Shown here: positions 8,001 to 32,000 of the stretch, one piece after another
Position numbering within the stretch: the first letter of the stretch is position 1
Layout of the letters: each line of letters begins with the position of its first letter
Assembly: GCA_002269645.1 (NCBI GenBank)
Contig: NIVC01000272.1
Location: forward strand, 62,001-126,000
Length of the DNA stretch: 64,000 nt
Reading direction: 5' to 3'
DNA from: Macrostomum lignano
Lineage: Eukaryota
Notes under the pieces: generated by a model
Told to the model about the DNA's origin: nothing
Databases searched by the model: none
The model's input: only the letters and a program-made list of their open reading frames with translations
Made by a program: the position numbers and the translations under genes

Positions 8001-11000
8001 ATCCGGGAGACTCCAGAGTGAGGGATCTGGGAGACACCAGAGTGAGGGATCTGGGAGACACCAGAGGAGGGATCTGAGGGACACCAGAGTGAGGGATCTG
8101 GGAGACTCCAGAGTGAGGGATCCGGAAGACTCCAGAGTGAGGGATCCGGGAGACTCCAGAGTGAGGGATCCGGGAGATACCAGAGTGAGGGATCTGGGAG
8201 ACACCAGAGTGAGGGATCCGGGAGACTCCAGAGTGAGGGATCCGGGAGACTCCAGAGTGAGGGATCCGGGAGATACCAGAGTGAGGGATCTGGGAGACTC
8301 CAGAGTGAGGGATCTGGGAGACACCAGAGTGAGGGATCCGGGAGACTCCAGAGTGAGGGATCCGTGAGACTCCAGAGTGAGGGATCCGTGAGACACCAGA
8401 GTGAGGGATCTGGGAGACACCAGAGTGAGGGATCTGAGAGACTCCAGAGTGAGGGATCCGGGAGACACCAGAGTGGGGCATTTGGGAGACTCCAGAGTGA
8501 GGGATCTGTGGGATCTGATGGATGTGATGATGGTGTTTTGCTAGCAGCAAGACCCGCAGACATTCGCACAGCTTGCACTTCCCAACCTCGCCGTAGGACA
8601 TGACCGAGCGCTACTTCCTCGGAATTTTCTGCGTGGAGGCCCTGCTGAAAATCGTGGCCCTGGGTTTCATCATGCACCGCGGCGCCTACCTGCGCAGCAT
8701 TTGGAACATCATGGACTTCGTAGTCGTGGTCACGGGGTAAGCACACATGCCAGATTTCACTAATACCGAATTAAGCATTGTATCTTTTACCACTAGAGGC
8801 TTTTGACTGTGTTGAATTTCAATCCCCCAAAAACTGAATTGCTGGAAGCCGCGGTCCTCATGGACAGCACCTCAGTTTCTTCCATCCAAGCCGAGGGACT
8901 TTACAGAACGGGGTGTAAAGTTTGCGAAATCAATTTGGGCAGAGGGGGCGACAGCACTTGTCATTCAGAGCGCGGGAATTGATCCGGGAGCGGGCGGGGG
9001 GGGCGGCTGCAGGTCCCCATCTGCCCCTGAGCGACAAAGCCGAGGGAAGCAGAGGGGAGGAGGGGGAGACGAGGAGCAGCCGGTCTGACCGGTTTTGCTC
9101 GGCGCGTCGCCTGAATGTCTCAAGGGATTCGCGAGGCGAGGCGGAGACGAGCAGACAGATTGCTCACAGTGTCCCCATGGAGACTGCAGCAGCGCCTTAT
9201 CCTGTTGGGTGTGAGATTGGTATTGAGCAATCTATGCGGTTGTTGTCAAAACTAAAGTATTTCATTTCGAATTTTGCAACGAGGGCTTTTTTATGACATG
9301 ACTCGTGCGCCGTCGGCTTACCCGGCCTTTCGTGCTCATCGCTGCTTATTGAGCCCTCTCGCCCTGTTTTGCACCCGGCTTTCAGAGCTGCGCGTTAGCA
9401 AAAAATTTTATGCCCAAAGTCTGCCTGCTCGTTTGAGCTTTTAAAGTTCCTCCTTTAAACTGACTGCTCAAAGTGGCTCAAGTTGGATGGAGAGCCGGCA
9501 AACAGAATTCTAAATATAGCTGCCTGTCTTACCTGCCACCGCGCCTCACTCAGCTCTCAGCTCTGCTCTCAGTCTAGCAGTTCCCCTGCTCACTCAGCTC
9601 TCAGTCTAGCAGTTCCCCTGCTCGCTCAGCTCTCAGTCTAGCAGTTCCCCTGCTCACTCAGCTCTCAGTCTAGCAGTTCCCCTGCTCGCTCAGCTCTCAG
9701 TCTAGCAGTTCCCCTGCTCACTCAGCTCTCAGTCTAGCAGTCCTCCTGCTCACTCAGCTCTCAGTCTAGCAGTTTCCCTGCTCTCTCAGCTCTCAGTCTA
9801 GCAGTCCCCCTGCTCACTCAGCTCTTAGTCTAGCAGTTCCCCTGCTCACTCAGCTCTTAGTCTAGCAGTTCCCCTGCTCACTCAGCTCTCAGTCTAGCAG
9901 TTCCCCTGCTCGCTCAGCTCTCAGTCTAGCAGTTCCCCTGCTCACTCAGCTCTCAGTCTAGCAGTTCCCCTGCTCACTCAGCTCTCAGTCTAGCAGTTCC
10001 CTTGCTCACTCAGCTCTCAGTCTAGCAGTCCTCCTGCTCACACCGCTCTCACTCCAAACTCGCAGGCTGCTGGCATTCATTCTACCCACATTCGATCAGC
10101 CGGCCCTGAGGTCACTCAGGGTCATGCGGCCTCTCAAACTGGTCACCGGGTTTGAGAGTAAGTAGCCATGCAGTCCCCCGGAGACTGCGCTGTCGGCCAA
10201 GCGCGCACACTGCCGCGCAGAAGCCCCGGTTGCAGGTGTCCCAGTCGGGAAGATCAGGCCTCAACACTGCTTATATATATTGATAAATGTACTCCGTTTG
10301 TCTTGTGTACAATATTAGCGCACTATCCTAGGCTCAGAGTCCGGCTTTGTAACTGCAGCGAACCCCGACTGGCCCGGTGAAGTTTTCAAATTTTGTTTTC
10401 ACACCCAAAGCTTTTGTCCCCCACCGCAAGGCACCCCCTAGACCAACCTCATTCAAAGCACAAATGACATATTTATGCAATGTTCAAGTTGTCTTGTGCA
10501 TAGGAGAGCCCAGTGCCGGTGTTGCACTGTATAGCAGTAAACAACATGCCTGCATACTTAGCTTTAATCATAGTTGATTTAGTTTTTCCCCAGTCGGTCA
10601 GGCAGACCTGAAGACGCCTCCGTAGACTGCAGAAAGCCAGAAACTGTGTAGCTGAAACTTGCGCACATCTCTCAAGCTTTGCATGCCAACCAGCAGCTGC
10701 CCTCTGCATCCGAAGCAAAGCTGATGTTGTTTGCTATCGCAACGCGCTCTTTGCAGGTTCGTCACCCTGTTCGCCTCCAACCAGAGCAGCTTCGACCTGC
10801 GGACGCTGCGGGCTGTGCGGGTGCTGCGCCCGCTCAAGCTGGTGTCCGGAATCCCAAGTATAGCAGCCCATCTCGTTCGCTTATAGTTTATTTCTCTCTC
10901 CAAGCCACAGATTGTTTTTATAAGCTTTGATTTTTAATCACAATTTTACTCTATCGGAATCGGATTACAGCTTAGACTGTTTTAATTTGCATCTGACAGC

Positions 11001-29000: not shown

Positions 29001-32000
29001 AAGAACCAGAACTCCATCAAGTACAGAATCTGGCGCCTCGTTGTGTCATCGCCGTTCGAGTACTTCATCATGGTGATGATCGCGCTCAACACTCTCATAC
29101 TGATGATGAAGGTGGGTCGCTGATTCGAGTCGCTGAACCGTACTAATCATGCTGCTATAATGTTGAGAAAGATTTATTCTGCATTTGAACTCAAACATGG
29201 AAGATTTTTTTAAATCCAACATGTATCAAAATGTGTCACAATGGTGCAAAGGGAGACAGGATGGCTCGAGATAAGTCAGGAATGGGTAAAGATGAGTCAG
29301 GATGACTCAAAATGAGTCAGAATGGCTCAAGCTGAGTGTCAAGCTGAGTCAGGGTGGGTCAAGATGAGTCAGGGGGTCAAGCTGAGTTAGAATGGGTCAA
29401 GCTGAGTCAGGACGTGTCAGGATGGATCAAGATGAGTCAGGACGGCCCAAGATAAGTCAGGATGGGTCAGTTGAGTCAGGGTGGGTCAAGATGAGTCAGG
29501 ATAGGTCAGTATGAGTCAGGATGGGTCAGTATGAGTCAGGATGGGTCAGTATGAGTCAGGATGGGTCAGTATGAGTCAGGATAGATCAGTATGAGTCAGG
29601 ATGGGTCAGTATGAGTCAGGATGGGTCAGTATGAGTCAGGATGGGTCAGTATGAGTCAGGATGGGTCAGTATGAGTCAGGATGGGTCAGTATGAGTCAGG
29701 ATGGGTCAGTATGAGTCAAATAAGTCAGCATGAGACAGGATCGGTGAGGCCTAGACTACCAAGAACACTCTTGCTGAATGTGCCCCGGGAGTTCAAGATT
29801 CTCAGTCGCTTCCACTCAAACTCAAGCGCAGTAAGGCATGCCTTTAACCCAGCTGAGAATCTGAGCCTCCCAGACAGAGGTGTCAATCACGCGCGTCGCC
29901 AAGCAAAAGCCGAACCTGCAGAAGCGGAAATCCGGGCTGCAAAGCGGAGCCTCAGCTGTCAATTTTGTCTCATTGTTTCAGTTTCACGACCCGACCAGAA
30001 GCTACAACACGTACAACGATATCATGAAAAATCTGAATACGGTTTTCACAATTGTGTTCACCATCGAATGCATATTGAAAATGATCGGATTAGACATCCG
30101 GGTAGGACTGTGAAGCCGCAAGCCAAAAGTTTATTCTATCAGTGCTAAATTGTTTTTGGAGACGCCCTGCACGACACAAAATATTTATTTGCTTGCAATT
30201 GCCAAACTTAAAGACTGGCATCAATCAAATATTATTTGCCTCGAGTGTGCAGCTATCAACTTTTCTAAACAATATTTTAAAAGCTTAAGTGACCGTCTTT
30301 GACCGCAGGAAGTAGGCTTTGGCTCGATTTTTCTTCTCTCGGTTTTTGTTTTCGCTTATTTAAAACAAACAATATATTCTATTTTATGCCTAACATGCCA
30401 CTGCTCGGGGATTGAATAGGAGGCACGTGATCAGATAATTACAGCCACCTCACGCCCTTTCTCTTTCGACACCTCACTAGCAAAGCCACCTCACACCCTT
30501 TCAACCATCACTCGAACAGCCACCTCACACCCTTTCAACCCTCACTCGAACAGCCACCTCACGCCCTTTCTCTTTCTACCCCTCACTAGCAAAGCCACCT
30601 CACACCCTTTCTACCCCCACTCGCACAGCCACCTCACGCCCCATCCCTTTCTACCCCTCACTTGCACAGCCACCGCAAGCCCTTCTACCCCTCCCCCGCA
30701 CAGCCACCTCACGCCCTTTCTATCTCTCACTCGCACAGTCACCTCACGCAATTTTCAAACTCTTTTCACTCACTAAATGTCTGTTTTTAGTAGCTGAATT
30801 TACCGGGGAATAACGGGTTCCAGTGGAATCCCTGAACTTTACGAACGCACTGCGCTGCAACGCCACCACTCGCACTGTGATCTCTCAGTACTACAGACGC
30901 GAAAGCCAGACAAAGGACGGGCTGGAGGACCCGAGCACCAGTCCTATCGGCATTATTGCAGCACTCTGGTCTACCTCAACTCAGCATTCACCGTCATGTT
31001 CTCAGTAGAGTGCATACTCAAAATTCTCGCCTTCGGTCCCAAGGTGATGCTCACCAACCAGCGACCGCCGAACCAAATTGTATTCACGTAGCTGTTATAG
31101 TTGACCCCGAGGCCAGCCCTCTTGTTGCGTTTCACTCTTCCGAGCACCAAACGCTTAATTTCGTGTCACGCGAAATCCGTTCGATTTGGTTGCCAGTTGT
31201 TTGTCCACCCGTGCTAATGGTAGCTTTTCTTCGTTTTGGATAAACCAGTCTCGATTATGTCTTGCTGTTCGTAGCCGGATGCAAATCCTGAGGTTCTACC
31301 TGAGCTCATGAAGTACTGAGAGCAGCACCTTAGAGACTTAGTCATTCCGCACCAAATGTAGTTCTTCAAAATTGTGTTGTACGAGCTAAAATGAAATAAC
31401 CACCACCCATAGGCTACTAACAAGATGAGCAAATGGGCATTGTTGTGCGCCGGCTTTGCACTTTTATTTTGTAAAGTTTCACTATGTCCAAAATTTTTGC
31501 ATGCCCGGCTGCTTTATTAGCACTGGTATTTTGCTAAATTATATTTTTCTTAGAATTTCTATTGCACAATTATTTCTGTTGTTTACTATTGTCCTATTTG
31601 ATTTAAAACTGTTCAAATATACATTAGCAGTCTGCTTTTTAATCTTTAATCTTTCGTTTTGCTGCTTTCAGAACTATTTCCGAGATCGCTGGAACATTTT
31701 CGACTTCATCACCGTGATTGGCAGCATCACGGATGTCTTGGTCTCAGCGTTGCAGGTTAGCAGTGTCTTTTAATTCGGCAGTTTTCTTTAACAGAAAGAG
31801 AAAACACTGCCTGCTAATCAAAGCTTCAGCGTAAAACCTTGAGAACGCCTCCCCCTGGCACTTTGCAGCAGCAAAACTTTCCCAACCTCGGATTTCTCCG
31901 CCTGTTTCGGGCCGCCCGCCTCATCAAGCTGCTGCGCCAGGGCTACACAATCCGCATCCTGCTGTGGACCTTCATCCAGTCCATCAAGGCCCTGCCGTAC

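Follow-up and report, generated by a model that had tools for sequence, protein, structure and literature searches.

How do invertebrates diversify the entry of calcium at presynaptic terminals? Most invertebrates have one Cav2 gene, and to our knowledge functional studies of how these animals diversify Cav2 presynaptic calcium entry have so far been made in Drosophila only. A locus of the flatworm Macrostomum lignano speaks to this question. It is found in the assembly Mlig_3_7 (GCA_002269645.1) at NIVC01000272.1:62001-126000; this whole stretch of 64,000 nucleotides is called the window here, and all coordinates below are window positions. Over the 41 kb that could be compared, the window agrees with this contig without a mismatch. 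The window contains a gene for a Cav2 alpha-1 subunit with four tandem clusters of homologous exons. In our judgement it is probable that this gene is best explained by clusters that are each most likely spliced one-of-two, by old exon duplications, and by a later separation of exon types into the two genes Cav2A and Cav2B of other flatworms. If so, the modularity of Cav2 exons can extend in one gene to two voltage sensors, part of the pore and segment S2 of domain IV (IVS2; other segments are named in the same way). The locus would also be a clean, datable example of alternative exons that began in one gene and ended as the features that tell two genes apart.

The Gene in the Window

First, the identity of the gene was examined by homology. 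A preliminary description of this DNA had assigned the gene to Cav2, and the assignment is borne out by the top database matches, the nearest structures, the position in trees and the pore motifs. The top 120 database matches are all type-A, cacophony or Cav2 channels. The best of them are Cav2 proteins of nemerteans, molluscs, brachiopods and flatworms, with about 63-71% identity, and Lineus, Tubulanus and Lymnaea stand at the top. Among solved structures, human Cav2.2, Cav2.3 and Cav2.1 are the nearest, ahead of Cav1 and Cav3, and in neighbour-joining trees the gene is placed within spiralian Cav2. The translated exons carry the four pore motifs ITMEGW (domain I), LT(G/S)EDW (II), STGEGW (III) and ATGEAW (IV), which give an EEEE selectivity filter. 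A segment of the I-II loop resembling the alpha-interaction domain (AID) and an IQ-like C-terminal segment are both present. Precomputed Pfam domains are Ion_trans on the annotated protein, and Ion_trans, GPHH and Ca_chan_IQ on a fragment of a paralog described below (P0324). By these sequence comparisons the gene is a Cav2, namely non-L-type high-voltage-activated, alpha-1 subunit gene.

The annotated protein (GenBank PAA86585, BOX15_Mlig012532g2, 1255 aa; hereafter P0010) is encoded in the window with 100% identity, exon by exon. Annotation of this type was built from a genome-guided StringTie/TACO transcriptome (PMC5730564), so that the exon junctions of P0010 rest on RNA-seq. The model consists of the first 26 coding exons and a mis-framed exon 27b. 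Towards the 3' end, similarity to the paralog reaches about 36.4 kb, and near 37.7 kb a C-terminal motif is conserved. The GenBank record has no annotation for the part from 31.6 to about 37.8 kb, which encodes domain IV, the EF-hand/IQ region and the C-terminus.

Four Pairs of Homologous Exons

Exons were found by three-frame reading of the DNA, and their boundaries were then fixed computationally. Eight exons forming the pairs 4a/4b, 12a/12b, 15a/15b and 27a/27b (Table 1) lie where the preliminary description had placed them, and the ends of its span, 10066 and 31043, are the start of 4a and the end of 27b. The channel segments that it assigned to the pairs are also correct: the end of IS3 to IS4 for pair 4, the end of IIS3 to IIS4 for pair 12, the domain II filter to S6 for pair 15, and the IVS1-S2 loop with S2 for pair 27. 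When the gene's own protein was searched against the window by tblastn, four extra copies appeared, each in the intron adjoining its partner (E-values 0.011, 3e-7, 2.5e-9 and 0.002), a likeness beyond chance. The introns separating the members of pairs 4, 12, 15 and 27 are 599, 680, 394 and 787 nt long. A sensitive tblastn self-scan of exons 1-30 found no further duplicated exons. A duplicated haplotype in the assembly was also considered as the source of the pairs, and this artefact is ruled out by the nucleotide identity of the members, which is just 49-62%.

Both members of every pair have the same codon phases and join the same constitutive flanking exons. In pairs 4, 12 and 15 no exon length is divisible by three, so inclusion of both members or of neither shifts the frame; the frame shift claimed earlier for double inclusion is thereby confirmed. 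Thus, only one-of-two products of these three pairs can encode a channel. In pair 27 both members are in frame by design, and their exclusion would need an active splicing mechanism. Aberrant products would presumably be cleared by nonsense-mediated decay. Fully canonical splice sites and an open frame are found in six of the eight exons, and the exceptions are 12a, which has a GC donor, and 27b, which has a frame break. The preliminary description had reported intact splice sites and equal phases throughout. The phases are indeed equal; the splice sites are less regular than reported, as the 12a donor is GC and 27b is frameshifted when read from its conserved acceptor.

By their positions, pair 4 would swap the voltage sensor of domain I, pair 12 that of domain II, pair 15 the surround of the domain II filter with the outer loop and S6, and pair 27 the S1-S2 loop and S2 of domain IV. 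From the analogy with the IS4A/B exons of cacophony and with exon 15a/b of NALCN, the choice of exon may shift the voltage or kinetics of activation (domains I and II), the domain IV sensor, and permeation or block. The repertoire of 16 isoforms proposed in the preliminary description would be reached if every combination were made; the choices may instead be coupled, for example 4a with 12a, the combination found in Cav2A.

Selection on Both Members of Each Pair

Within pairs, the synonymous divergence (dS) is saturated at 1.7 or more, the nonsynonymous divergence (dN) is 0.34-0.59, and their ratio (omega) is at most about 0.2. Saturated dS with far lower dN implies that the duplications are old and that neither copy has been neutral for most of the time since. 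These values point to long-term purifying selection on both members of the pairs. Conservation across species or in a paralog is found for 4a, 4b, 12a, 12b, 15b, 27a and 27b; for 15a the backing is its annotation.

The paralog is a second Cav2 gene of M. lignano, represented by UniRef A0A1I8G0I3 (P0324) and its cluster mate A0A1I8J3F4 (P0444, 1889 aa). In the tree it is joined to the window gene with 100% bootstrap, and the amino-acid distance between them is 0.15 in conserved columns. The P0444 model holds counterparts of 12a and 12b in tandem (12a'/12b') and of 27a and 27b in tandem (27a'/27b'), plus 4b' and 15b'. Between the window and the paralog, 4b is 94%, 12a 89% and 12b 82% identical, 15b agrees at 37 of 39 residues, and 27b is 81% and 95% identical in its two aligned parts. 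The 27a' exon (FHGASQFYSDIMRNLNIAFTVVFSIECLLKMLGLDIR) is about 60% identical to 27a by eye, and 53% in the tblastn high-scoring segment pair (HSP), which includes flanking residues. For adjacent constitutive exons, the identity between the two paralogs is 88-96%. From these comparisons, pairs 12 and 27, at least, are intact in two genes since an old duplication. As a database model, P0444 is faulty: in pairs 12 and 27 it puts the two members one after the other, and it runs into the intron after 15b.

Exon Types Across Animals

A comparison across Spiralia, proposed in the preliminary description for dating the duplications, was carried out with the four exon positions extracted from 120 Cav2 proteins and from isoform sets of single genes. 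Pairs 4, 12 and 27 have counterparts elsewhere, and for the pair 15a/15b no named counterpart was found.

For pair 4, the type of 4b, with five S4 charges, is canonical in nearly all Cav2 sequences. Exon 4a encodes 31 residues, with an S3-S4 linker shorter by three residues and an IS4 of four charges, in which the first gating arginine (R1) is missing. Its type follows the pattern ...ILP..(D/N)Q.A.R.LRV.RPLKL..G..S, and it occurs elsewhere in an alternative isoform of Patella caerulea, in an Aplysia protein, and as the sole exon 4 of one group of neodermatan Cav2 proteins, called Cav2A here. In a neighbour-joining tree of the exon, these neodermatan, Patella and Aplysia sequences form a clade with 98% bootstrap. 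Alternatives at exon 4 are present in the isoform sets of Lineus, Haliotis and Patella. As judged from exon sequences, 4a/4b are older than the split between molluscs and flatworms.

For pair 27, two exon types are found within single genes of Haliotis, Patella and Penaeus, and 27a is most like the Tubulanus and Lymnaea types, the paralog aside. A pair of this type is also present, by sequence, in molluscs and arthropods, and its duplication is old. Alternative exons for IVS1-S2 are apparently not discussed in the literature that was searched. Two consecutive homologues of the IVS1-S2/S2 exon were seen in arthropod gene models (P0048, P0049, P0115, P0117, P0047, P0058, P0075, P0085 and P0116), and two consecutive IS3-S4 exons in lepidopteran models (P0075 and P0108). 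The doubled arthropod exons are probably mutually exclusive pairs that were merged by gene predictors.

At positions 12 and 15, no isoform variation was found outside flatworms in the 120 proteins and the isoform sets. The earlier impression that pairs at IIS4, the II pore and IVS2 are unusual can be kept for the pore pair, which is rare. Alternatives at IVS1-S2 (and IS3-S4) are common in mollusc and arthropod Cav2, and the origin of the IIS3-S4 pair is flatworm-wide. Of the four pairs, two are of a known kind, lying at positions where alternatives are common in protostome Cav2. What is new is the IIS3-S4 pair and the way in which it and the IS3-S4 pair are jointly divided between Cav2A and Cav2B, the pore/S6 pair, in which the filter has a near-unique neighbour, and the annotation and assembly defect in 27b.

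The pore pair is the only one of the four without a named counterpart. Exon 15b is 70% identical to the Lymnaea sequence. Exon 15a reads VLTSEDWN; here the filter Glu is preceded by Ser in place of Gly, and Glu, Asp and Trp are unchanged. In domain II, 303 of 305 fetched Cav sequences have Gly at the position of this Ser. The loop of 15a gains an N-S-S glycosylation sequon, and its S6 differs at many positions. By sequence searches, 15a/15b are so far seen only at this locus. Two database entries indicate that the arrangement may not be unique. One is P0446 (UniParc UPI00060F11D9, 138 aa), an open reading frame that spans two tandem copies homologous to the domain II filter-S6 exon, at a distance of about 32 codons. 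Both copies end in a GN/C... donor context (a slash marks the splice junction throughout), and the second copy is nearest to schistosome Cav2A; this points to a duplicated pore exon in a further genome, AT-rich and probably that of a flatworm. The other is P0554 (from ENA metagenome contigs, 438 aa), a Cav-like protein in which the filter Glu of domain II likewise follows a Ser (QILTSEDWN).

A Probable Separation of Exon Types into Two Flatworm Genes

Two Cav2 genes, Cav2A and Cav2B, have been reported in Schistosoma and Dugesia (PMC3930560). The neodermatan Cav2 proteins that we collected also fall into two groups, about 64% identical to each other. Here the label Cav2A is given to the group with the 4a and 12a types and Cav2B to the group with the 4b and 12b types; the labels are those of this analysis and the groups are not mapped to the published accessions. 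That the two groups are isoforms of one gene is ruled out, as they are about 64% identical throughout their length.

The two groups differ in which exon types they carry. One carries the 4a and 12a types, and the other carries the 4b type, which was read from proteins and not from DNA, with the derived 12b type (ASLFE.IWQ...). Exon 12b and the exon 12 of neodermatan Cav2B form a clade with 91% bootstrap in a neighbour-joining tree, and 12b is 74% identical to the Cav2B exon of Dicrocoelium. Against Echinococcus Cav2A, 4a is 77% identical to the single exon 4, 12a is 71% identical to exon 12, and 27b shows 58% identity. In DNA of the Cav2A locus of Echinococcus granulosus, single exons of the 4a, 12a, 15b-like and 27b types are present, and no remnants of 4b, 12b or 27a were found. 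In the partial Cav2B locus of Dicrocoelium there is only a 12b-type exon, and no remnant of 12a was found in the 24 kb flanking intron. The neodermatan isoform sets contain no alternatives at these exons.

Gene trees were built by neighbour-joining from 1228 constitutive columns with the alternative exons masked, and from 460 C-terminal columns that include the paralog. The Macrostomum genes fall outside the clade of the two neodermatan groups, with 100% and 92% bootstrap; all trees are neighbour-joining trees, the exons are short (31-38 aa), and Macrostomum is the only free-living flatworm included. The order of events does not depend on the gene trees. Since the derived 4a specific to Cav2A and the derived 12b specific to Cav2B occur in one Macrostomum gene, the exon duplications precede the gene duplication, whatever the topology of the gene tree. 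On this comparison of exon sequences, 12a/12b arose before the duplication that gave flatworm Cav2A and Cav2B.

The simplest reading of the distribution of 4a+12a and 4b+12b is a separation of splice isoforms. An ancestor would have had the 4a/4b and 12a/12b alternatives in one gene. After the Cav2A/Cav2B duplication on the way to Neodermata, Cav2A would have retained 4a and 12a, and Cav2B 4b and 12b. Macrostomum would have retained both choices in one gene, with pairs 12 and 27 at least in both of its own paralogs. The preliminary description had held that splicing here substitutes for gene duplication. Within M. lignano this does not stand, as there is a second Cav2 paralog that also has 12a'/12b' and 27a'/27b'; across flatworms an interchange of the two is seen, in that Cav2A has 4a+12a and Cav2B has 4b+12b. 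For schistosomes and tapeworms, the differences that define Cav2A against Cav2B map to IS3-S4 and IIS3-S4, which may serve as a guide to their functional and pharmacological differences.

A further proposal is more speculative, and we regard it as possible rather than probable. The ancestral gene may have made two "virtual paralogs" by a coordinated choice of 4a+12a or 4b+12b, which later became hard-wired as Cav2A and Cav2B of parasitic (probably also triclad) flatworms. Macrostomum would still splice them, and it would also swap the II pore/S6 segment by use of 15a, giving presynaptic channels that differ in permeation or block.

Relics, Joint Inclusion and Convergence

The chief alternative is that one member of some pairs works alone and that the others are relics (12a and 27b, perhaps also 4a, 15b and 27a), so that far fewer than 16 channels would be made. 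We consider this unlikely, though it deserves serious attention, because several observations speak against a gene with four working one-of-two choices. The sole transcript-derived model, P0010, represents one fixed combination, namely 4b, 12b, 15a and 27b, the last through a 26-to-27b junction. Database searches aimed at Macrostomum transcripts returned none (one of them, with a 446-aa domain II query that seems to favour hits of similar length, gave only proteins of 268-780 aa), and no transcript with 4a, 12a, 15b or 27a was obtained. In the gene model of the paralog, 4a' and 15a' are absent, a statement that concerns the model and not the DNA of that gene. For 15a, cluster representatives were searched exhaustively, and no specific orthologue came to light. 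For a docking-site/selector mechanism of RNA pairing, the four clusters offer only chance-level inverted repeats of 14-22 nt or homopolymer pairs, none of which links one site to both exons. In neighbour-joining trees such as those above, long-branch attraction could inflate the neodermatan Cav2A+Cav2B clade. Two further difficulties lie in the exons 12a and 27b.

The sole frame-keeping donor of 12a, when joined to exon 13, is GC (CACTAG/GCAAGT at 15378). The homologous exon 12 of Echinococcus has a GT donor. By this comparison the change from GT to GC at the 12a donor is derived, which favours a relic, and it could weaken the exon. However, the context AG/GCAAGT is the usual strong one of GC-AG introns, and the same gene has a constitutive GC-AG intron. 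This intron (27418-27494, 77 nt, AAG/GCAAGA ... cag/GCC) lies between the IIIS4 exon and the next exon, and P0010, which rests on RNA-seq, splices it out.

In the assembly, exon 27b is thrown out of frame by a break of 1 nt. The exon starts with YYRRETQTLDGLEDPEHQAYKHY... in the paralog of M. lignano; in neodermatan orthologues the start is Y(Y/H)R.... The acceptor used by P0010, at 30889, matches this conserved exon start and gives an exon of 155 nt. Compared with the frame of the paralog, the window is one base short at the C-run 30930-30933, where the tblastn HSPs are split and EHQSYRHY... follows in another frame. P0010 then hits a premature stop at 31008, and by this break the model is cut off and domain IV is left without annotation. 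An in-frame 27b of 147 nt needs a cryptic AG at 30897, 8 nt downstream, and 12 of its codons are then not in the ancestral frame. The 15 codons before the break remain conserved in the ancestral frame, and the M. lignano assembly is based on PacBio reads and Canu (PMC5730564). For both reasons, the break is most likely a 1-base assembly error, or else a very recent real lesion, and either would fit poorly with a long-standing relic.

The relic explanation also has to face the exons themselves. All eight have open reading frames and usable splice sites, if the 27b break is taken as above. Exons 12a, 12b, 15b and 27b are 81-95% identical between the paralogs, like constitutive exons, and dN far below the saturated dS leaves no room for a long drift of either copy. 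The explanation by one-of-two choices among old pairs is therefore preferred here.

It is very improbable that the pairs are not mutually exclusive and that both members are included together, in frame in the case of pair 27, and in the case of pair 12 through a GT donor of 12a. Such a donor could be AAA/GTCACT at 15369/15370, 8 nt upstream of the GC donor, which would give a 12a of 105 nt. The WormBase-type model P0444 does join a 12a' of 35 aa to 12b', and 27a' to 27b', in frame, and some predicted arthropod isoforms join two homologues of exon 27. However, from channel architecture an extra S2 or S3-S4 would misfit the four-helix fold of the voltage sensor. In P0010 exon 11 is followed directly by 12b, and exon 26 by 27b, so that 12a and 27a are skipped, and one copy is found in neodermatan genes and in all curated Cav2 proteins.

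Equally improbable is that 4a/12a came to resemble Cav2A, and 4b/12b Cav2B, by convergence or by a transfer of exons from one ancient paralog to another: the shortness of the exons (31-38 aa), the use of neighbour-joining only and the presence of more than one Cav2 gene in M. lignano leave some room for it, but convergence would have to repeat shared derived states (in 4a the length of 31 aa, the loss of R1 and ILP...QPA(L/V)R...VTGFES, in 12b ASLFE.IWQ...), 4a-type alternative isoforms in molluscs make the pair older than flatworms, and both M. lignano paralogs cluster together outside Cav2A+Cav2B.

Coordinates and Neighbouring Elements

Table 1. The Cav2 gene, its paired exons and the constitutive exons used to reconstruct their junctions.
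Feature	Position	Length	Strand	Description
Cav2 (type-A/cacophony-like) alpha-1 subunit gene	5006..37800		+	3' end at least about 37.8 kb; from homology and exon reconstruction
Exon 3 and exon 5	8597..8736 and 12033-12179		+	Constitutive flanks of pair 4 (exon 3, IS2-IS3); junction reconstruction
Exon 4a	10066-10157	92 nt	+	cag/G ... A/gtaagt; end of IS3, S3-S4 linker, IS4
Exon 4b	10757-10857	101 nt	+	Canonical IS3-S4 exon; used in P0010
Exon 11 and exon 13	14564..14676 and 17760-17891		+	Constitutive flanks of pair 12 (exon 11, IIS2-S3)
Exon 12a	15265-15377	113 nt	+	C-terminal IIS3, linker, IIS4; canonical-like (FFHP...); donor AG/GCAAGT at 15378-15383
Exon 12b	16058-16170	113 nt	+	Derived IIS3-S4 exon (ASLFEVIWQ...); used in P0010
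Exon 14 and exon 16	18233..18305 and 21035-21135		+	Constitutive flanks of pair 15 (exon 14, II pore helix 1)
Exon 15a	19276-19396	121 nt	+	Domain II filter, P2 helix, loop, N-terminal two thirds of IIS6; used in P0010
Exon 15b	19791-19908	118 nt	+	Canonical domain II filter-to-S6 exon (ILTGEDWN...)
Exon 26 and exon 28	28947..29111 and 31672-31755		+	Constitutive flanks of pair 27 (exon 26, end of III-IV linker and IVS1)
Exon 27a	29982-30101	120 nt	+	IVS1-S2 loop and IVS2; ends ...KMIGLDIR
Exon 27b	30889-31043	155 nt (or 147 nt from AG at 30897)	+	IVS1-S2 loop and IVS2

The introns of the gene contain minisatellite and microsatellite arrays, at 5584-8508, 9556-10051, 18959-19243, 21219-21675, 24227-25707 and other places, with units of 24 nt (122 copies), 32 nt (15 copies), GACA (71 copies), 9 nt (51 copies) and 30 nt (49 copies). 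Two arrays stop about 15-35 nt before the acceptors of 4a and 15a, which leaves poor polypyrimidine tracts there.

Downstream of the Cav2 gene, a gene for a cys-loop ligand-gated ion channel (Neur_chan_LBD, Neur_chan_memb) is repeated in tandem on the plus strand, in at least four copies at about 43.0-44.3, 48.5-52.4, 54.4-56.4 and 58.9-60.8 kb, the transmembrane exons of which are very similar. At 62210-64000 on the minus strand, reverse-transcriptase open reading frames of a retroelement (RVT_1) are split over two frames and continue past the window's end.

Comparison with Known Systems

Mutually exclusive clusters that change S6, S2, S3 or turret segments are known from vertebrate channels, as exons 8/8a, 21/22 and 31/32 of Cav1.2 and e37a/e37b of Cav2. 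Exons 12a/12b of Lymnaea Cav3 are likewise mutually exclusive calcium-channel exons. These vertebrate and Lymnaea pairs lie at other positions, and none is at IS4, IIS4 or the domain II filter-S6 of a Cav2.

The closest known counterpart of pair 4 is found in the fly. The IS4A/IS4B alternatives of Drosophila cacophony, which the preliminary description had cited, are confirmed, and they determine the voltage of activation and the localisation to active zones (Bell et al., 2025; PMC11828482). Like pair 4, they are tandem homologues in a Cav2 gene that cover the IS3-S4 linker and IS4 (about 33 aa) and differ in the number of S4 charges. The A/B exons of Lepidoptera did not group with the 4a type, a comparison in which the short exons give little power; 4a is shorter by three residues and lacks R1. 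The second pair of the fly, A/B of the I-II loop, is absent from the Macrostomum gene in the self-scan, and according to the same paper (PMC11828482) pairs at IIS3-S4, in the II pore and at IVS2 are lacking in the fly.

For the pore pair, the nearest case is exon 15a/15b of NALCN, a pair that both flatworms and molluscs have (Senatore et al., 2013; PMC3557258). The same module is concerned, namely tandem mutually exclusive exons for the domain II P-loop, filter and proximal S6 of a four-domain channel. However, NALCN belongs to a different gene family, and its filter residue switches from E to K. In Macrostomum 15a/15b the filter Glu is kept in both exons, and it is the Gly-to-Ser change beside it, the outer loop and S6 that vary.

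The proposed history of pairs 4 and 12 resembles the separation of splice isoforms described for vertebrate genes by Abascal et al. (2015; PMC4494069), including that of CACNA1C and CACNA1D, in which the daughters of a duplicated gene likewise keep different homologous exons. The flatworm case differs from these in that two clusters, in two voltage sensors, would have been partitioned together, and in that it concerns an invertebrate phylum. It also differs in that the unseparated state survives in the early-branching Macrostomum, even after a gene duplication of its own.

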